A stretch of DNA of 64,000 nt from Diplonema japonicum (GCA_964019335.1 OZ025707.1:447803-511802), one strand, 5' to 3'; positions 54,237 to 64,000 are shown, counted from the first letter of the stretch. Numbers and translations: made by a program. Notes: generated by a model not told the origin, from the letters alone.

Positions 54237-54773
54237 TATGATGAACAGAACACTTGCTGGCTGGTGAACGCAAACGCAAATTTTAAAATTGTCTAGTTTT
54301 TCTTCTTCTTAATTGTCTTGTATTTCTCTTGTGTTTTTTTTAGTGGAAGGTCTTTTTTTTACTGCAGATTTTTCAAGCCGCACGCAGGAGGGTTCATGGC
54401 GGGCATTGTGAGGCCCAGTGTGACGCCTCCGGAAAGGGATCTTGTCGGGCTGGGCCAGGCGTGGATGCGGCATGGGATCTTACCGGAGCTGACGAGCTCA
54501 GACCTAGCAGTCTGTTACCTAGACGGCGCATGCACACCCGACAGGTGGCGCGAGCACAACAGCGTAGAGACAACACCATGCGGCGGGGGTATTTTCTCTC
54601 TGTCCCCCGGGACCACAGTCTGCACCCCATCGACAACACCTAACTTCCGCTAGCAGAAGACTTAGATAGCAAAAAAAACTAGATTATTTTGTTGCATTTT
54701 TTTCTTCTTTTTGTTTTCTTGTTTCACCAAAACACTTAAAAAAAAAACAGTTAAAAACTTACGGAAACAAAAA

Positions 54774-56213
54774 ATGCCGGTTGGACCTTTCAGCCCCAGG
54801 GCTTCAAAACCTTGGGATGAACTGAACCTTGTTACAGGGAAGTGCGGTAATGACCCTCTGTTTGAGGGCGGCCTCAAGGAGGAGGCACCCATGAAGCACA
54901 GCGACGCAGTGATGAGTGGTGACCTGTCGACTGTGGGCGAGGTGGACCTCGTCATCGTGGGTGCCGGGCTCAGCGGATGCATCCTCGCAGAGAAATGCGC
55001 CTCGGAGCTCGGTTTGACGTCTGTGATCCTTGACAAGAGGGACCACATTGGGGGGAACGTGTACGATGAGCTGCACAAGGAGACGGGGATCAGGGTGTCC
55101 CAGTATGGTGCGCACCTCTTCCACACGCAGTTCGAGAGGGTGTGGAAGTACGTGCAGCAGTACTCCGAGTGGGAGCCCTTTGACCATCGTGTGGTGGGGA
55201 GGGTTGCCGACAAGGACAACGTCGACCAGCTGGTACCCATCCCGCCCACCTCCATCTCGGTGAACAAGCTCTTCGGAGAGAACATCCAAACGGAGGAGGA
55301 GATGCAAGCCTGGTACGACAAGGTTCGCGTCCCCAACGCCGAGCCCCAGAACGGCGAGGAGGCCGCCCTCTCCCGTGTCGGCCCCCAGCTGTACGAGAAG
55401 ATCTTCAAGCACTACACCAAGAAGCAGTGGGACAAGTACCCCTCTGAGCTCGACGCCTCCGTCTTGATGCGTCTGCCCTGCAGAACCACCACTGACGACA
55501 GGTACTTCCCCGACAAATGGCAGGCCCTCCCTGTCAGGGGGTACACGAGGATCTTCGAGAACATGCTGTTCACCGGAGCTGCCAAGGACATGGTGCAGCT
55601 TAGGTTGAACTGCGACTTCTTCAAGGCGAAGGCTGAGGGGAAGCTTCCCAAGCACAAGATGCTTGTGTTCACGGGGCCAATCGATGCCTTCTACGCCAGC
55701 CAGGGGCTTCCCAAGCTGGAGTACAGGTCCATCAGGTTCGAGGAGAAGGTGATGAAGAAGCCTGACCAGGGGTTCTTCCAGGAGGCGATGGTGGTGAACT
55801 ACACGTCCGCCGAGGTCCCCTTCACGAGGATTGTGGAGTACAAGCACACGCCAAACCAGCCTGAAGCCATCAAGGCAGGCGAGTGCAAGGACTCTGTCGT
55901 TTACTACGAATACTCCACAGCTGAGGGCGACCCGTACTACCCTGTACCCAACCCTGCCAACGCTGCACTGTATGAGAAGTACAAGGCCCTCGCGGAGAAG
56001 GAGGAGGGCGTCTGCTTCGTGGGGAGGCTCGCAAGCTACAAGTATGAGACTACGGGATCTTCACACACACACACACACACACACAGGTACTTCAACATGG
56101 ATCAGGCGATCCTGAACGCACTTGAGATGTTCGACAGCCTCAAGGAAACTGGCAAGCTCGTGCCCAAGCGCTCTCCTGCCGAGATGCAGGCTTCTGCTCC
56201 CGTCCTGAGGTAG
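54774..56213 (+). CDS. glf: UDP-galactopyranose mutase, bacterial-type; intron 56042-56086
   Basis: GAGLSG, HIGGNVYD, YGAHLFHT, YTKKQW, DDRYFPD, GYTRIFENM, TGPIDAFY, LEYRS, FTRIVEYKH, PYYPV, GRLASYK|YFNMDQAI. Removing the 45-nt (CA)n intron restores the YKYFNMD motif. Confidence 0.92.
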   Translation: MPVGPFSPRASKPWDELNLVTGKCGNDPLFEGGLKEEAPMKHSDAVMSGDLSTVGEVDLVIVGAGLSGCILAEKCASELGLTSVILDKRDHIGGNVYDELHKETGIRVSQYGAHLFHTQFERVWKYVQQYSEWEPFDHRVVGRVADKDNVDQLVPIPPTSISVNKLFGENIQTEEEMQAWYDKVRVPNAEPQNGEEAALSRVGPQLYEKIFKHYTKKQWDKYPSELDASVLMRLPCRTTTDDRYFPDKWQALPVRGYTRIFENMLFTGAAKDMVQLRLNCDFFKAKAEGKLPKHKMLVFTGPIDAFYASQGLPKLEYRSIRFEEKVMKKPDQGFFQEAMVVNYTSAEVPFTRIVEYKHTPNQPEAIKAGECKDSVVYYEYSTAEGDPYYPVPNPANAALYEKYKALAEKEEGVCFVGRLASYKYETTGSSHTHTHTHRYFNMDQAILNALEMFDSLKETGKLVPKRSPAEMQASAPVLR

Positions 56214-57269: not shown

Positions 57270-59864
57270 ATGAGAAACAAACCTCAAGCAAGTCGGCGAT
57301 GCGGCGGGGGGTGGATCATAAGCAGCTTAGAACAACACGCCCATAGCGAATGGGAGGAAACCCAACGAAGGAGGAAGGCCGCAACTTTGAAGGTCACGTC
57401 CGACCACGCCTATGCGTCGCTGCAAGACAGCGCACCTCAAGTCCAAGAAACGACAACACCACCACCACCACCACCAGAAGATCTTGCCCCAAAGACGGAA
57501 CAACCACACGGGGCCACCATGCAAGGACACCTTGCTTCTATGCGGACCAAGACCACTCAGAAGACAACAATGAAACTAAGCACCTCTGAGGAAGCGCATC
57601 TCAACAAGCTGAGAGCGGAACTGAAAATGCACAAAGAGGTGAAGCCCATCGATGCACAGTACAAAACCATCGCAAAGGACGAAATGGTCCGCCTGCTGCG
57701 CATGATGGGCGGGCAAGAGCTCTCCCAGGAGGCGGTGGCCTCCCTTGCCGCTATGGGCATCGACACATCAGTTCTCGACAATGCCAACCTAACGAGCGTC
57801 AATGACATGACTGTGCGTGATGTTCGCATTCGCAACCTTGACAACCCACCCATCGGTATTGATATGCTTCCTGCCATGCGCACTACCGCGGATGCCATTG
57901 AAAGCAACGGCCACGCAGGCTTCGCAAAGCTCTTCCTTGCCCCCGAGGTCACTCGTTACGGCACGCTTCTCTTCTGGTTTGTTTTCGCCGCCTTTTTTCA
58001 GAAGTCCGACCTCCCGCTCTTCCGCGACCGGCTCAATGAGGGGACAACCCTGCAGCTCCGGCTCTACCCTCCTTCCAACAAAACCTTTTTCGAGTTCTTC
58101 CACACTGCCATGTCGCAGGCCATCTGCATCACCCACATCAAAGCCTTCAAGGGCAGCGAGTTCTGCTTCAAAAGAACATGGGCCGACCGTGTGTATGTTC
58201 TGATATTTCAGCTTTTAACTGGGCTGATCCACACCGAGCAGGCCTGCGCTTCGATCAGACGAAAGACATTTAAGAACGGGCCTGCCTCGCTTCCAGCGGA
58301 CAAACCGGTCAAAAAGGAGGACCCAGCCCCTCCAAAGGCAACGGAGGACAGCCACGTCGTGAAGCAGCATCCGTTGAGGGAGCTTGCAATCGGTTGCCAG
58401 AACGCGTGGGGTGCGTACGATGTAGGGGTGTACCTCCCTAGGGGGTCGCTTGTCGATGGTGTGCAGCACGCTGAGGCTTCGATACAGACAATGCAGAAGC
58501 AGTGCACGTTCAACCTGAAGAAGGAGCGATACAAGTTCGGGCGGTTTCCTGTCAACATCAACATCGGGCAGTTTGAGGCCGACTTCAACATCTTCAACTC
58601 GCAGATCTTGGACTACGACGTCGCCATGAAACACCGCAGCGGCCAGGTTCGCAGGAAGCCTGCCCACACGGCCTCTGTCACGAACCCGCTTCACTTCGCG
58701 CCAATAAACAATAATTTTTCATCGGAGTACCAAAGCCTCGTGAGGGGGGAACCTACACGTGTCAAGGCAGCAGGCAGCAAGCCCCTCCCCCCTGGCTGCT
58801 ACTACGAAACTTCCACTCAGCATTCGCAGATGTCACAGGACAGAATGGACGACATCACACACAGGCACTCGTACGTGAAGCCCCCGTCGCCCCGGTGCGA
58901 TCCCTTTGCTCTGGAGCTCTGCAGGTCGGCGTTCCGAAAGGCGTTGGACGAGTACACGTTTGTGTACAGCGATGCAAAGGCCCCCAACACAGATAGGATA
59001 GAACGAAGGGCAACAATGGACCTGAAGAACATAACACGGCTCATCGGCGCTGGGCGTCGCGCTGCCAACCGGCTGGCCTTGTCAGTGGCGTCTCTCACAC
59101 TTGCCGCTGCAGCGTTGGTTGGTGTGTGTGAGAACGTCATTGCAAGCCCCACAACAGAGTACGATGAGGAGGTCAAGTCGATGATGAGCGACATCCTTAT
59201 TTCTCCCGAGAAGAACACCACAAAGCTAACCGAGTTGCTTCGGCACGAGGCGCCCGATAAGCGGAGTGCTCCTGTTCGCAGTCAGCATTTGGAGCCAACC
59301 ACCGCCACCGCTGAGACATCTCCGAAGGCGTCCAAGAAACGCCAGTTTAAGAGATCCTGCAGACGAGGCGCGAACGGGATGATCACAGTGCCGACCTACC
59401 TCTATGACGTGAGTCCTGTCATCAAGGGCACCATGGGGGCACCGATGGAAATGCGTGTGTCTCAGAAGGTGATGATGCGGACACTGACCTTTGGGGGTGC
59501 GGAATTGGGCAAGTACGAGAAAGCGACGGAGATCAAGAAGATTCACGATAAAAACGAAAAGATGGAGCGAGAGCAGGCTGTTTCCCTGTACACAAGCAAC
59601 CTGCGCAAGCGGAACCACTTGGAACAGGATATTGACAGGATTGATAAAGTGCAGAGTAAGGCGAATAGCGACTCTAAGAAACGTTCTGAGTTCTGCGACC
59701 AGATAGCCTCCGAGTCCAGGCTGCAGACCACTGCCATGCGACGGGACGACAACGCCTTCAGCGGCACCATCCTGGCGCAGGCGGCGATGGGAGTTGTGCA
59801 CTCGCTTGAAAAGCAGCTTCGCAAGTTCGACGGAAAACCCGCACCCAGATCGCAAAGGAGGTGA
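57270..59864 (+). CDS. FAM227-like protein (FWWh domain)
   Basis: LLFWFVFAAFFQ…FFEFFHTAMSQAICITHIKAFKGS.FCF…IFQLLTG matches the recalled FWWh pattern. Confidence 0.6.
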   Translation: MRNKPQASRRCGGGWIISSLEQHAHSEWEETQRRRKAATLKVTSDHAYASLQDSAPQVQETTTPPPPPPEDLAPKTEQPHGATMQGHLASMRTKTTQKTTMKLSTSEEAHLNKLRAELKMHKEVKPIDAQYKTIAKDEMVRLLRMMGGQELSQEAVASLAAMGIDTSVLDNANLTSVNDMTVRDVRIRNLDNPPIGIDMLPAMRTTADAIESNGHAGFAKLFLAPEVTRYGTLLFWFVFAAFFQKSDLPLFRDRLNEGTTLQLRLYPPSNKTFFEFFHTAMSQAICITHIKAFKGSEFCFKRTWADRVYVLIFQLLTGLIHTEQACASIRRKTFKNGPASLPADKPVKKEDPAPPKATEDSHVVKQHPLRELAIGCQNAWGAYDVGVYLPRGSLVDGVQHAEASIQTMQKQCTFNLKKERYKFGRFPVNINIGQFEADFNIFNSQILDYDVAMKHRSGQVRRKPAHTASVTNPLHFAPINNNFSSEYQSLVRGEPTRVKAAGSKPLPPGCYYETSTQHSQMSQDRMDDITHRHSYVKPPSPRCDPFALELCRSAFRKALDEYTFVYSDAKAPNTDRIERRATMDLKNITRLIGAGRRAANRLALSVASLTLAAAALVGVCENVIASPTTEYDEEVKSMMSDILISPEKNTTKLTELLRHEAPDKRSAPVRSQHLEPTTATAETSPKASKKRQFKRSCRRGANGMITVPTYLYDVSPVIKGTMGAPMEMRVSQKVMMRTLTFGGAELGKYEKATEIKKIHDKNEKMEREQAVSLYTSNLRKRNHLEQDIDRIDKVQSKANSDSKKRSEFCDQIASESRLQTTAMRRDDNAFSGTILAQAAMGVVHSLEKQLRKFDGKPAPRSQRR

Positions 59865-60631
59865 ATCTGCTAAAAGATAAGAACTTAACTTGGGTTATTT
59901 TACAATTTCCAGTTAATTGTAGTTCTTTGTATTACCACTTATAATTTGTATCTTGCAGTGCTAGGGACTTTTTTGCTTTTGGGACTTGGCTTAGATGTCT
60001 CTTGGGTAAAAGAATATCGGTTCGTGATGGTTCTAAAAAAACTCGGTTTTTTTTTTTTTTTGTCTTTCCCTTTTCCAACCTTGTTGAGCATTTGTGAGAC
60101 ATTGGGGAATTTTGAACTAATCGGGTGTTTTGCGCATTTTGAAAACCGATTCATTAAACTTAGGGGTCTAGTTGGCTCTTTTGGGTAGGCAATAAAATAG
60201 CTCATCGATGCTATAAACTAGTCTTTGGTATTGTTAAAACAAAAATTAAAGTAAGAATGGATGAAAGTAGTGAACTGTCTTTTTCTTTCTTTGCACCACC
60301 ACGCACCGAAATTTATCAAATTTTCTTTTTTGCTTTTCCAAGAAAACCAATAACTGTAGTGAATTGTTTTTGCTAAAAGAGTCGAGGCAGCTTTCTTCAA
60401 CCTTAGCCTTCTGCAGGACAAAACCGACTTTAACTCAAAGTTAAAAGTAGTTCTGGTGATCTCTATCTATTATTCTTCTTTTTCTTATTCATTTGGCTTC
60501 TTTCAAAACAAGTACACTGGGAAAATAAAAGAACAAAGCAAAAAGGGCGTGGGGGGGGGGGGGGGGAAGAACGAAACTAAAGGAACATGAATGGAAGAGA
60601 AAGAGATCAGACGAGGGGATGAACGATAACA

Positions 60632-61046
60632 GTGTTCGTGAAGACGGGAGGCGGGGTTCACGATGTGGAATTGTCGGGGAAGGAGACGGTGGGGAGCCGG
60701 GTGTGCTCGAAGGCAAGTTCAAACTGGTTTAGGAGAGGTCCTGAACGCGGTGAATCTTCAGGACTTGGGCTCGTGGAGGGCTGCGTGGTGGAGGTGAAGA
60801 TGAGAACCGTTCAGCTGGAGGACCTTAGAGCTCAGAAGTCGCTTCGGAGCTTGAGGGCTGACCCTGAGCTAGTTCTGGTGGTGGCGGTCAGTTCCTTGTT
60901 GTCACCGACCCCTCGTCATCCTAGGACATGCCTTCTTCAACGCGTGCGACAAGATGTCGCAGATCTGGATCGGGTGGTACGCCGACGAGGGCCGCGAGCA
61001 GTCCGCAGCCTTTTACAAGGGCCATATCATCGAGGACCTGCACACG
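60632..61046 (+). pseudogene. Decayed chimeric coding fragments (ubiquitin-like piece, DUF4116-like piece, second unrelated fragment)
   Basis: VFVKTGGGVHDVELSGKETVG…LGLVEGCVVEV, SLRADPELVLVVAV; in another frame from 60903, HRPLVILGHAFFNACDKMSQIWIGWYADEGRE…, cut off by GCAAAC repeats and the SL exon. Confidence 0.4.
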
Positions 61047-61064
61047 GCAAACGCGCAAACCCGC

Positions 61065-61103
61065 AACCAACGATTCTAAAGCTACAGTTTCTGTACTTTA
61101 TTG
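61065..61103 (+). ncRNA. Complete 39-nt spliced-leader (mini-exon) sequence, diplonemid type; relic or insertion-site copy rather than a normal SL RNA gene
   Basis: AACCAACGATTCTAAAGCTACAGTTTCTGTACTTTATTG: 39 nt, ending in the conserved euglenozoan CAGTTTCTGTACTTTATTG. Followed by GTCGTT instead of the usual GTATG of the SL intron. Confidence 0.9.
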
Positions 61104-61275
61104 GTCGTTCGTGTTCTGCTGGTGCCTGCCGCCTCTGCCTGGGTTTGCCGCTGCGTCCGTCGTCCGTCGTCGCCGTCGTCCGGGGGGGTTGTTTTGCCCG
61201 TCGGCCTGCCCGCCGCTTACCGAAAGGATCCCCTCCCCCAACACACACTTTAAAAAAAAATAAAAAAAATAAAAA

Positions 61276-64000
61276 ATGGATCCAAGACGGAACGCAAGAG
61301 GAGGTGACCGCGCAAACCGCAGGGAGAAGGAACCCCGACAGGCCGCCAGGCTGCACACGACGCCAGGGCCGACCCAACCAGACTATCTGGTTGGGCAGTA
61401 TGAATCCCCACCCCCTAGATCCCCCCACCCCCCTTTAGAAAAAAAAAATAAAATAAAAAAATCACTAGCAGAGACCGCGGTTTTGACCGCCGCTGCTACA
61501 GCCACGGCCGCCCCAGCCGCCCTGAACGCCGCAGCCGACCCTGCCGCCCTGATCGCCGCAACTGAGACCGCCGCAGCCGCCCCTGCCGCAGCCACGACCG
61601 CCGCGACCACGACCCCTGCAGCCGACCCTGCTATTGTTGAAGAGGGAAGAAAAGAGGGAGAAAAAAAGGGGTGGGTACTGGTGTATGGTGAACACCCTCC
61701 CGGGTTGAGGACGGGCCCTGCCCCTGCCTTCCCGAAAGCCCTGCTTTCAGGAAAGTGGGAGGCCCTGTCTGGGAACTCAGGGAGGGAGACCCTCCAATAC
61801 GGGTACCGGTGGGAGGGGACGAACGCCAAGGTGCGCCCCACCACGGGGATCCCAGGGGGGGCGGAGGGGTGGGTGAGGGAGGTGGCCGCCGCCGCAGGAC
61901 TCAAGGTGGTCCCCAACCAGGTACTTGTCAACAAGTACAAGTCTGGTTGTGGGATTGCCGCCCACAAGGACGACGCGAGGCTGGGACCGATTGTCCTAGT
62001 CCTCTCGTACGGAGCCGAGACCACAATGGTCATGAGGAGGGGGGACAGGGTGGCGAGATACCTGGTGCCCCCCTTCTCATGGGCACTGTTGGAAGGTGAA
62101 GCGAGACACCAGTGGACGCACCACATCCCGTCCGGGATGTCCACTGGTGTCAGGGTGTCGATCACCCTGCGTGCGGTAGGCCCCAAGCTCACCCGCACAC
62201 CCCAGGAAGACCCATCCCCTGGGTTAACAGACGAACCCCCTTTTTTAGATCCCCTTTTTTGTGGGCAAGGGGGGGTGGCACTCCCGAGAGAGGATAGTGC
62301 CCCACCCGCCCCCTTTTTTTTTTTAGAACCCTCTTCGGAGGAAAACAGACCCTCTTCGGAGGAAAATAGAGAGAAAGGGGAAGAGGTGGCACTCCCGAGA
62401 GAGGGTGGTGCTCCTCCCCCCCATTTGTCCCCCCCTTTTTCATTTTTAGAGCCCTCTCCAGAGGAACCCTCCACGGAGGTAAAAAACAGACCCTCTTCGG
62501 AGGAAAACAGAGAGAGAGGGGAAGAGGTGGCACTCCCAAGAGAGGGTAGTGTTCCTCCCCCCCATTTGTCCCCCCCTTTTTCTTTTATAGAGCCCTCTCC
62601 AGAGGGACCCTCCACGGAGGTGAAAAACAGACCCTCTTCGGAGGAAAAAAAGGCAGAGGGAGAGACAGCACGCCCGAGAGAAGGTAGTGCCCCTCCCTCT
62701 CTGCCCCCCATTTTTTCTGGACCCTCTACGGAGGTGTACACCCTGGTCCCCAAGGGCCGGGGGCTTTTTTTGAGGGTGGAAGGGAAAGAAAAAAAAAAAA
62801 CAAACAAGGAGGAACCTTTTTTCTTTTCAAACAACCAGGGGGACCCAGCATCCACCCCCACCGCCCGCCAAGGTGTGGTTGGGGCGGAGGCTGCGAGCGA
62901 CGTGAGAGCACCACTGCACACCCTTGTGAGAAGACAGAAAAGAGCCCCCTGGATTGCCATGGGTGGCAGGGAACCTAAGCCAGCGCCCAAGCGGAAGAAG
63001 AACAGGAGGAGGCACAGGAGCGAAACGGCCCTTCAGAGGCGTCGGGAGAAGAGGACCAAGGCGAGGGAGGGGGCGAGGGAGGCTGCCAGACAGGAGAAGA
63101 AAAGGCACCGTCGTGCGAGGAAAGAAGGGAGGAGGAGGGCCCGCAGAGAGGAACACGAGGCCGCCCTGGAACAGAAGCCAGATGACCCTGCAATGGGGCT
63201 GAAGCGGACCGAGGTGGGAACGCCTGGAGCCCAACCCCTGGCACCCAGAATCCCGGCACCTGGGGCTGCAACCGGCGCAAGGAGGCACCGCAGACGGACG
63301 GGACACAGCAAGGAAGGGGTGAGATGGGAGCACCTGGGGGCGTGGGCCTGGGTCGCCCTGTTCTCCCTCTTGCTGATCCCAGGGGTGAGGCAGGTGCTGG
63401 GGGCGGGCGTCGGGATGGCCCCCTCCTTCCTGCATGCGGCAGTGTTGTGGAAGAGGCCGGGGAGCGACAGGAGGACCACCCGCAGGTCAAGGGTACAGGT
63501 GGGGCCCCGAGGGGATGAATGGTCCGCCGGGGAGCTCGCTTGGCTAGCGGTAGGGGGCACTCTGGTGGGAAGCACTTCAGTTTGGATAGGGCTGATGTCG
63601 CTCTGGGCCATGGCGGAAGTGATGGTGGGGAAAGCTGGTGCTGGCCCGACCCAGAGATTCGGACCGGTAAAGCTGAAGAAGACAAGACGCGGATCGAGAG
63701 GTCACTACCGGCCGGTGTACTTGGGCCCGCCTAGAAGCTCAAGACGCAGAAAAAAGAAGGAGGACGCCAAGCAAGCGGCGAAGGAACGAGCTGAGACGGA
63801 GGATAAGCTCTTTCAGGCCGAACACCTGGACGCAAACCCGCAAACCCGCAAACCCCGCAAACCCGCAAACCCGCAAACCCGCAAACCCGCAAACCCGCAA
63901 ACCCGCAAACCCGCAAACCCGCAAACCCGCAAACCCGCAAACCCGCAAACCCGCAAACCCGCAAACCCGCAAACCCGCAAACCCGCAAACCCGCAAACCC
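61276..64000 (+). CDS. Unannotated ORF, stop-free to the window end (~850 codons before the repeat array): Ala/Thr linker, AlkB-family 2OG-Fe(II) dioxygenase, in-frame repeats, Arg/Lys-rich and hydrophobic segments
   Basis: Manual translation from ATG 61276 (MDPRRNARGG…) finds no stop. GRETLQYGYRW…PNQVLVNKYKSGCGIAAHKDD…IVLVLSYG…LLEGEARHQWTHHIP…RVSITLR (~61740-62175) carries NxY, HxD…H and RxSxTxR. It is absent from the ORF track, presumably because it has no stop inside the window. Confidence 0.85.
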   Translation, partial: MDPRRNARGGDRANRREKEPRQAARLHTTPGPTQPDYLVGQYESPPPRSPHPPLEKKNKIKKSLAETAVLTAAATATAAPAALNAAADPAALIAATETAAAAPAAATTAATTTPAADPAIVEEGRKEGEKKGWVLVYGEHPPGLRTGPAPAFPKALLSGKWEALSGNSGRETLQYGYRWEGTNAKVRPTTGIPGGAEGWVREVAAAAGLKVVPNQVLVNKYKSGCGIAAHKDDARLGPIVLVLSYGAETTMVMRRGDRVARYLVPPFSWALLEGEARHQWTHHIPSGMSTGVRVSITLRAVGPKLTRTPQEDPSPGLTDEPPFLDPLFCGQGGVALPREDSAPPAPFFFLEPSSEENRPSSEENREKGEEVALPREGGAPPPHLSPPFSFLEPSPEEPSTEVKNRPSSEENRERGEEVALPREGSVPPPHLSPPFSFIEPSPEGPSTEVKNRPSSEEKKAEGETARPREGSAPPSLPPIFSGPSTEVYTLVPKGRGLFLRVEGKEKKKTNKEEPFFFSNNQGDPASTPTARQGVVGAEAASDVRAPLHTLVRRQKRAPWIAMGGREPKPAPKRKKNRRRHRSETALQRRREKRTKAREGAREAARQEKKRHRRARKEGRRRARREEHEAALEQKPDDPAMGLKRTEVGTPGAQPLAPRIPAPGAATGARRHRRRTGHSKEGVRWEHLGAWAWVALFSLLLIPGVRQVLGAGVGMAPSFLHAAVLWKRPGSDRRTTRRSRVQVGPRGDEWSAGELAWLAVGGTLVGSTSVWIGLMSLWAMAEVMVGKAGAGPTQRFGPVKLKKTRRGSRGHYRPVYLGPPRSSRRRKKKEDAKQAAKERAETEDKLFQAEHLDANPQTRKPRKPANPQTRKPANPQTRKPANPQTRKPANPQTRKPANPQTRKPANPQT
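62275..62730 (+). repeat. Coding minisatellite, ~4 units spaced 111/141/138 nt
   Basis: gtggcactcccgagagag…gccctctccagaggaaccctccacggagg…aaacagaccctcttcggaggaaaa units start at 62275, 62386, 62527 and 62665. Confidence 0.85.
63831..64000. repeat. (GCAAACCC)n 8-mer tandem array, about 21 units, runs off the window; telomere-like composition
   Basis: Seen directly; one unit has an extra C near 63855. A short version gcaaacgcgcaaacccgc lies at 61047-61064. Confidence 0.95.

Follow-up and report, generated by a model that had tools for sequence, protein, structure and literature searches.

The window analysed here is a 64,000-nucleotide stretch of the Diplonema japonicum genome (GCA_964019335.1 OZ025707.1:447803-511802), which in our numbering is C60:447803-511802 and ends where contig C60, with its 511,802 bases, ends. 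Its terminal part carries a spliced-leader (SL) exon fused to an open reading frame (ORF) for an AlkB-like domain, with units of an octameric repeat on either side. We read this unit as the 3'-truncated piece of a family that is, with high confidence, a telomere-associated, autonomous and SL-headed non-LTR (long terminal repeat) retrotransposon of the kind that encodes a restriction-enzyme-like (REL) endonuclease, as R2 and CRE do. A first-pass annotation, made from the sequence alone, had described 18 nt of repeat, an exact SL, a GC-rich leader, an AlkB ORF and a repeat array from 63831, and all of these features sit where they had been placed:

61047..61064, plus strand: telomere repeat, 18 nt, gcaaacgcgcaaacccgc, 2.25 units (2.5 units by TRF), between the inner fragment and the 5' end of the element
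61065..61103, plus strand: SL exon, exact 39 nt, a reverse-transcribed copy matching the genomic SL copies and the exon of the SL-RNA gene
61104..61275, plus strand: GC-rich 5' leader of the element, 172 nt, differing in sequence from the SL-RNA intron (GTACCCAATCTGATCC...)
61276..63831, plus strand: polyprotein ORF, first 851 codons, ATG at 61276, cut at 63830/63831 with a 1-nt overlap with the repeat
61771..62172, plus strand: AlkB-like 2-oxoglutarate (2OG)-Fe(II) dioxygenase domain, HxD...H and RxxxxxR motifs intact
62342..62697, plus strand: 141-bp in-frame tandem repeat, 2.5 copies, the copy number differing among element copies
63831..64000, plus strand: terminal telomere tract, (GCAAACCC)21, which runs to the contig end and seals the truncated element

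The frame of the window copy is open through its 851 codons to the repeat and then on to the window end. Past the shared '...cacctgga', 21 other loci continue with CCCCTTTGCGGACTTGACG..., and only the window copy switches to the 8-mer at this point. The sequence at 61065-63831 is the 5' 2.77 kb of a longer element whose distal ~7 kb have been lost, the break having been sealed by telomere repeats. Such joints are found elsewhere as well: the repeat is attached to arbitrary broken sequence, in the read sets at no fewer than 11 different internal positions of the element and with phase differences of 1-5 nt, and for this reason the downstream array is to be taken as a healed chromosome end. The earlier proposal that the repeat brackets the unit, as a target-site duplication or as a repeat tail, therefore has to be given up, since the 8-mer is the telomere repeat and the array caps a copy that lacks ~7 kb of its 3' part. 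The read sets come from three studies, are all Logan contigs with none on record as RNA, and hold 60-93% of the words of the window stretch; the comparison covered 58001-63853, and contigs of this type give no RNA ends, strand or physical DNA ends.

What the window copy has lost can be read from its relatives. In the assembly that was searched (62.5 Mb, 132 contigs), the query 61065-63830 has at least 81 matches, most of them at 95-100% identity, and the ORF continues in other copies into OTU, reverse transcriptase (RT) and REL domains, which is not the picture of a single-copy sequence with an ordinary cellular parent gene. The intact element measures ~9.6-10.7 kb and consists of the 39-nt SL, the 172-nt leader, one ORF of ~2,800-3,000 codons, a 3' untranslated region (UTR) and poly(A). 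The ORF encodes, in this order, the AlkB-like dioxygenase, the 141-bp repeats, a basic region, zinc fingers, an OTU protease, the RT, a CCHC motif with the REL endonuclease, and a long tail. One copy, L043 (C75:1-10000, minus strand), can be followed from end to end: SL, leader, AlkB ORF and 141-bp repeats are succeeded by an ORF of 2,318 aa (L043:1307-8263:-), in which Pfam recognises the OTU protease at aa 456-561 (E=4e-12) and RVT_1 at aa 961-1164 (E=2e-16), and then by a pyrimidine-rich 3' UTR of ~650 nt with 26-bp repeats and by poly(A). In this copy the AlkB and RT parts lie in different frames; in other copies they are joined, and in several a Pfam scan of the genome places the AlkB domain within an open frame of 2,826-3,005 aa. 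The start codon is kept in 18 copies, four of which, including the window copy, are open to the end of the stretch examined, and another one of the 18 is open for 1,284 codons.

The RT has R2 retrotransposon proteins as its closest solved relatives (E=3e-7) and 242 homologues at 30-46% identity. On its 3' side lies the endonuclease motif C-x4-C-x10-H-x3-C-x6-RHD-x19-E-x10-RPAD-x15-D, and the series CCHC...RHD...E...RPAD...D is kept in homologues from Diplonema papillatum, a sponge, Symbiodinium and a moth. It fits the published consensus of CRE-type REL endonucleases, which is CCHC followed by RHD/N...E...R/KPD...D/E (PMC12857005), with spacings slightly off and with RPAD in place of R/KPD. 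Upstream of the RT, zinc-finger motifs were recognised by eye (C-x4-C...H-x5-HH and a second Cys/His cluster), without a Pfam match. Since RT, REL endonuclease and AlkB share one open frame, the element is autonomous and its intact form is one giant polyprotein; autonomy, which had been left unproven because the window holds no RT, is thus carried by the full-length copies. The suggested affinity to Penelope-like or Athena elements does not hold either, the RT being R2/CRE-like, the REL endonuclease being present and the 3' end being poly(A).

The AlkB domain is well preserved. Pfam 2OG-FeII_Oxy_2 (PF13532) matches aa 166-299 of the window ORF (E=8.8e-14), and the segments AHKDD, WTHHIP and RVSITLR align to ALKBH8, the best solved relative (E=2e-9). 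The AlkB motifs, HxD...H for the iron and RxxxxxR for 2-oxoglutarate, are kept both in the window copy and in a second subfamily of the element, and between the two, at 72% nucleotide identity, the AlkB dN/dS (nonsynonymous to synonymous rate ratio) is 0.22-0.24, that is, purifying selection. An exhaustive HMMER search gave 1,398 distant relatives, none above 48% identity among the best 150, and a word-based homology search with the AlkB domain alone gave no match. The genome has 8-10 AlkB genes of cellular type, which have far higher Pfam scores and internal positions, and no short AlkB protein exceeds 42% identity to that of the element. By analogy with viral AlkB domains, this domain would most likely demethylate bases in the RNA from which the element itself is copied; for OTU, analogy likewise suggests polyprotein processing or removal of ubiquitin as the most likely role. 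We found no paper describing AlkB together with OTU in a retrotransposon.

D. papillatum has homologous polyproteins with AlkB(+OTU), which go under the names 'tRNA (carboxymethyluridine(34)-5-O)-methyltransferase' or 'SLACS 132 kDa protein'. The GenBank models P0134, P0127 and P0271 of this species are pieces of AlkB-OTU-RT retroelement polyproteins. A 'dozen AlkB-type genes' have been cited for D. papillatum (PMC10161547); some of these may be retroelement domains, and its count of cellular AlkB genes is probably inflated.

The 8-mer (GCAAACCC)n is the telomere repeat of this genome. Five tandem units of it have 5,287 matches, which lie at contig ends in everything inspected, and arrays of (TTAGGG)4 are found nowhere in the assembly. 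On the top strand the unit reads GGGTTTGC at left ends and GCAAACCC at right ends, with the same polarity at all 19 ends examined; loci at which the repeat was noted, besides the window, are the contig ends C1, C3, C4 and C5 and L005, L017, L021, L022, L024, L043 and L045-L060. At each of the 19 ends the C/A-rich strand runs 5'-to-3' toward the end, which is the opposite of canonical telomeres, and the strand polarity of the telomere thus appears, to judge from the assembled ends, to be inverted. A TERT-like ORF of 1,083 aa with weak Telomerase_RBD and RVT_1 matches lies on C41 (L065:709-3960). Some ends hold long and homogeneous blocks of variant repeats, namely the 9-mer GCAAACCCC and the 10-mers GCGCAAACCC and GCACAAACCC (L049, C100 left end; L056, C21 right end), which suggests copying of local variants or template slippage. 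Contig C30 contains an internal array (L067, C30:334800-336000) of the form (GCAAACCC)n-N200-(GGGTTTGC)n; these are two ends joined head-to-head by Hi-C scaffolding, and C30 may be two chromosomes. The published genome of D. japonicum YPF1604 comprises 62.3 Mb and 118 chromosomes, and the paper mentions neither telomeres nor retroelements (PMC13598402). We found no paper describing this telomere repeat; a literature search with the 8-mer in all rotations gave only chance primer or sequence matches.

Copies of the family are almost confined to chromosome ends, where the sense strand runs in the same direction as the C-rich strand of the telomere and poly(A) faces the terminus. Matches lie on the minus strand at low and on the plus strand at high contig coordinates, and the ~85 element-borne AlkB domains found in the genome Pfam scan obey the same end-directed placement. 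At least 40 of 49 element 3' ends (...GTCCCCCTTTTT followed by poly(A)) lie within ~10 kb of a contig end, with poly(A) toward that end. Many copies have no repeat on their 5' side. The poly(A) at the 3' junctions has a length of 2-67 A, and four kinds of sequence come next: the telomere repeat, always in one phase, A(n)CCCGCAAA; a scrap of 15-60 nt with the repeat behind it; another copy of the family that lacks its 5' part; or the SL of the copy that follows. On the 5' side of the 34 SL heads lie telomere units, a preceding copy's poly(A) or 3' UTR, or pieces of other copies that are truncated at the 3' side, and the head-to-tail chains at repeat arrays that had been proposed are borne out. 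Telomere units stand 5' of the SL in the window copy and in L006, L017, L018, L022 and C9, and L068 likewise has a short tract ahead of the SL. Both sides are telomeric in the window copy, C9, L017 and L022; many other copies abut poly(A) or element scraps. The cleanest copy, on C9, reads as unique DNA, four telomere units, a partial SL, the SL, the full-length element, A7 and ~600 bp of telomere to the contig start.

Three further arrangements at these loci deserve a description. At the left end of C75 (L043:423-510), the copy ends ...TTTTT-A7-CCCCAAACCCGCAAACCCG-A50; apparently transcription of its RNA ran on into a telomere tract, poly(A) was added after 19 nt of the repeat, and the product was retrotransposed. 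On C24, three copies of the second subfamily lie in tandem (6263, 16922 and 27581) with a period of 10,659 bp and identical upstream spacers of 160 nt, two of the three having open frames of 3,005 aa (L072/L073), and this trio looks like a tandem duplication, not three separate insertions. L047 holds tandem 377-bp copies of the 3' UTR only.

As far as its DNA copies tell, the 5' SL of the element is shown to have been copied from RNA. The SL of the window is identical from nt 3 onward to more than 30 other genomic SL copies and to the exon of the SL-RNA gene as read in the public read sets. The gene, present in tandem copies on C15, continues TTATTG|GTACCCAATCTGATCC..., the commonest continuation in the DNA read sets, and the element continues after the SL with GTCGTTCGTG..., which is unlike the SL-RNA intron. 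An Rfam scan of 60800-61500 found no family, and hence no match to an SL-RNA model. Of 34 copies, only 10 have A at base 1 of the SL, which amounts to a random base, and 28 have it at base 2; beyond that, starting with base 3, the copies are near-uniform. The randomness of base 1 fits a cDNA that ends before the capped, modified first base. Sequences 5' of the SL are unrelated among copies. The annotation's reading of a retroelement copy with a reverse-transcribed SL at its 5' end is borne out by the leader, the uncopied base 1 and the varied flanks.

Relic leaders add to this picture. In four copies with three leader variants (L018, C8:849418, C12:811871 and C20:399041), a full SL is followed by TTTCTGTACTTTATTG, which is what remains of an SL once everything up to and including its internal CAG has been removed; this is the mark left when the transcript of a genomic SL receives a new SL by splicing. 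In one sub-lineage the SL is fused at GATCCCC, which follows AG in full-length leaders. L017 and L020 have double-SL junctions, and these, together with fusions that have no preceding AG, suggest that template switching by the RT takes place too. No SL-less copy of the leader start, with an AG acceptor ahead of it, was found in the assembly, the search giving only two SL+TG variants. A candidate internal trans-splice site at 62783, seen as read joints from 61103-5 to 62783-5, was rejected: the contigs diverge from the element after 62808, no genomic copy carries the fusion, and the only matches are to a different family, whose 5' UTR is A-rich.

An SL head seems to be the general condition among the long interspersed nuclear elements (LINEs) of this genome. 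It contains at least 234 SL 3' halves, followed by many different recurrent sequences, and several of them lie 3.3-3.7 kb upstream of the RT domains of other families, on the same strand. SL and RT pairs were noted at C20:670782/RT 674091, C44:64535/RT 60484, C3:788275/RT 791929 and C51:127996/RT 123935.

From these observations we propose the following mechanism. Element RNA, produced by read-through of an end-directed transcription unit, would receive the SL by trans-splicing. The REL endonuclease would then nick the G-rich strand (GGGTTTGC), and the TTT-3' end of the nicked strand, or poly(T) opposite the poly(A) of a neighbouring copy, would pair with the poly(A) tail and prime reverse transcription. 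Because the sense strand is collinear with the C-rich strand and poly(A) is in phase with the AAA of the repeat, the first strand most likely starts at a 3'-OH in the G-rich strand (...GCGGGTTT-3') or in that poly(T), a strand choice that matches the strand rule of MoTeR, FoTeR and TRAS1. The cDNA would stop at SL base 2, the capped and modified base 1 being uncopyable. Template jumps would build the head-to-tail chains and the 377-bp tandem copies of the 3' UTR and would capture scraps such as a piece of an ABC-transporter gene, and terminal copies would later erode and be re-capped, as in the window.

Several points weigh against this reading. Inner telomere tracts ahead of the SL measure 16-48 bp throughout, shorter than random insertion into tracts of 150-900 bp would lead one to expect, and, as said above, many copies have no repeat on the 5' side. 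The fusions SL|CTGGTGCC, SL|AAAGGATCC and SL|CCTGTCGG have no preceding AG and fit template switching better than splicing. Given that the assembly holds no SL-less copy of the leader start, the proposed cycle does not account for the return of an exact single SL at every round, since a genomic copy that is spliced again would be expected to yield relic forms, which are the rarer ones. That the element is expressed and trans-spliced is deduced from its DNA copies only, the cleavage specificity of the endonuclease is a predicted one, and the placement in the CRE clade, made by motifs and automatic 'SLACS' names, should be taken as provisional.

Two of these points feed an explanation that keeps the element and changes how it arrives. 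A critically short or eroded chromosome end could capture the cDNA, its own 3' end pairing by microhomology with the 3' end of a free first-strand cDNA and copying it, the telomere repeat being added afterwards, so that ends would be joined without endonuclease cleavage. The short inner tracts would suit this, as would the many SL heads that abut 3'-truncated pieces without repeat, just as eroded ends would; junction microhomologies are present (GCAA in the window, AAC on C9, AACC in L022), and the succession of poly(A), repeat units and next SL in L017 and L022 reads like successive end additions. Nevertheless, the motifs of the REL endonuclease are conserved and intact, and this explanation names no primer for the free cDNA. 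Poly(A) abutting a 5'-truncated copy is simply explained by priming at a neighbour's poly(T) or by template jumps, and the fixed orientation follows directly from strand-specific nicking. We regard end capture as unlikely, though as a serious competitor to insertion by target-primed nicking.

The same standing, unlikely and yet to be reckoned with, is given to the possibility that the SL was never on the element's own mRNA and that the RT jumps at the RNA 5' end onto a free 39-nt SL exon or onto another SL-capped RNA. End-to-end template jumping by the R2 RT was reportedly described by Bibillo and Eickbush in 2002, and the fusions without upstream AG at several positions, the double-SL junctions of L017 and L020 and the lack of an SL-less master copy in the assembly would all follow from such jumps. 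Against it, in three leader variants the relic SLs have their first base exactly behind the internal CAG, and AG precedes the GATCCCC fusion, both of them splice-acceptor signatures; moreover, dozens of copies share an identical main junction.

A bolder extension of the proposed mechanism is, in our estimate, rather improbable. Here the chromosome ends would be built 'wrong way round', the C/A-rich (GCAAACCC)n strand being the 3'-ending one, and would be co-maintained by SL-capped LINEs priming on the G-rich strand, and AlkB would strip methylation (cap-4-type, m1A, m3C) from the element's own RNA so that the RT could read to SL base 2.

Insertion into an SL-RNA gene in the manner of CRE, SLACS and CZAR, with the SL as the exon of the target, had been offered by the first-pass annotation and gains some appeal from the CRE/R2 kind of RT and REL and from the automatic name 'SLACS' of the D. 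papillatum homologues. It is very improbable, since the whole 39-nt exon is fused to a leader unlike the SL-RNA intron (GTACCCAATCTG...), no promoter or repeat of an SL gene lies upstream, base 1 of the SL is missing and the location is telomeric. Site-specific insertion within SL-RNA genes is not seen in this family, whose flanks are telomere units, poly(A) or scraps. At C2:150582, an SL exon with the genuine SL-RNA intron lies 3.8 kb upstream of the RT of another family (C2:154407-155096, same strand, 2,072-aa frame), and here an element may indeed have inserted into an SL gene in the SLACS/CRE manner.

An assembly chimera or cDNA contamination at the contig end would explain why none of the listed pieces of short Logan contigs spans 61048-61065, and yet it is just as hard to believe, given the same architecture at dozens of contig ends of a HiFi assembly, the share of the stretch's words held by the reads of three studies and the many independent element/repeat junctions in these reads. 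A plain, non-autonomous processed retrocopy of one of the 8-10 cellular-type AlkB genes, made by the RT of another element, would be in keeping with the lack of an RT inside the window and is the least credible account of all, as the same ORF continues into OTU, RT and REL domains in other copies, the cellular genes score far higher against Pfam and sit internally, and no short AlkB protein comes closer than the identity given above.

The surroundings of the window copy comprise two further features:

60482..60888, no strand assigned: piece of another dispersed repeat family, 72-77% identity to dozens of copies, e.g. clusters on C95, C93 and C91
60911..61050, plus strand: 140-bp internal coding fragment of an ABC-transporter gene, in sense, 99% identity to C116:117326-117461, where the gene continues

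Full copies of the ABC-transporter gene are found on C116 and C102. The fragment is wedged between the other repeat and the telomere units, and its last 4 nt (GCAA) are common to the telomere-type repeat. It was probably acquired via template switching or end repair. The annotation had counted this upstream coding fragment as a link of the chain; it is a piece of the transporter gene and does not belong to the element. The long ORFs of the window (1-59864) are nearly all on the plus strand, e.g. that for UDP-galactopyranose mutase at 54711-56213, and the chromosome arm is transcribed toward the telomere, which would supply end-directed read-through transcription of the element. From the end of the last long ORF at 59864 to the contig end, the repeat-rich stretch is only ~4 kb.

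Among known systems, the CRE-clade telomere LINEs MoTeR of Magnaporthe and FoTeR of Fusarium (PMC12857005) share with our element the RT with a C-terminal CCHC/RHD...E...R(P)AD...D/E series, the fixed orientation at chromosome ends with the sense strand collinear with the C-rich strand, the variable tandem repeats and the link to end instability. Their 5' end points toward the terminus, whereas here it is the 3' poly(A) end, because the repeat array has the opposite polarity. Their ORFs of ~1,150 aa contain RT and REL only, in contrast to an ORF ~2.5 times longer with AlkB and OTU, a poly(A) and an SL head. The trypanosomatid elements SLACS, CRE1-2 and CZAR are, like ours, euglenozoan REL-endonuclease LINEs linked with the SL. 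Their insertion sites lie within SL-RNA genes, where they interrupt the SL exon between nt 11 and 12. Our element, by contrast, begins with a complete SL exon derived from RNA, has telomeric flanks and does not involve an SL gene. TRAS1 and SART1 of Bombyx mori are LINEs that lie in one orientation in telomere repeats with poly(A) in phase with the repeat, TRAS1 being collinear with the C-strand; their endonuclease is of the AP type (R1 clade), they have two ORFs and lack an SL as well as AlkB and OTU, and the telomere polarity is canonical. One-orientation telomere insertion and in-phase poly(A) are thus shared with our element, and endonuclease, ORFs, SL, AlkB/OTU and polarity are not.

For the pairing of domains, the nearest parallel lies outside retroelements. 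AlkB domains in replicases of plant RNA viruses of the Flexiviridae type were reportedly described by van den Born et al. in 2008. Plant RNA viruses with AlkB (+OTU) use an RNA-dependent RNA polymerase and infect plants, and the presumed role of the domain is repair or demethylation of their own RNA. In both cases an AlkB-like dioxygenase followed by OTU lies in the polyprotein of an RNA-templated replicator; the sequence relationship to the AlkB of plant viruses is at superfamily level only, the closest solved relative of the element's domain being the AlkB of ALKBH8.

The elements HeT-A, TART and TAHRE of Drosophila (PMC5537684) likewise form head-to-tail LINE arrays at chromosome ends with eroded terminal copies. 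They replace telomerase repeats, are primed by the chromosome end, have poly(A) toward the centromere and erode at the 5' side, whereas in D. japonicum the element is found alongside telomere repeats and a TERT-like gene, poly(A) lies toward the end and truncation is on the 3' side. Penelope-like and Athena elements have a PLE-type, telomerase-like RT, a GIY-YIG endonuclease or none, and short reverse-complement telomere tails; here the RT matches R2/LINE proteins, the endonuclease is of the REL kind and the 3' end is poly(A). Dinoflagellates are known for relict SLs, DNA-encoded SL copies with nested relics cut at the internal AG, which testify to successive cycles of trans-splicing and reverse transcription (PMC5585692, PMC6050394, PMC12014239). 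The element has a DNA-encoded SL at its 5' end in 34 junctions and nested AG-truncated relics too; in dinoflagellates these sequences belong to retrocopies of ordinary genes, and here to autonomous LINE families, apparently several.

Telomere-dedicated LINEs are known from insects, fungi and Giardia. An SL head, an AlkB+OTU polyprotein and a non-TTAGGG telomere are not known to occur together elsewhere, and we found no published description of this element family. To our knowledge, the pairing of AlkB and OTU is otherwise known from the replicases of plant RNA viruses. In practical terms, some of the 'AlkB-type genes' and 'tRNA (cm5U34) methyltransferase' models in D. papillatum are retroelement domains. 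The inverted telomere polarity, if confirmed, would be an exception to the rule of a G-rich 3' strand. An AlkB domain under purifying selection, accompanied by OTU, makes the idea of a retroelement that demethylates its own RNA template testable. Finally, the SL at the 5' end is direct DNA evidence that, in a euglenozoan, a LINE transposes through a trans-spliced RNA, and the same probably applies to other LINE families of this genome.

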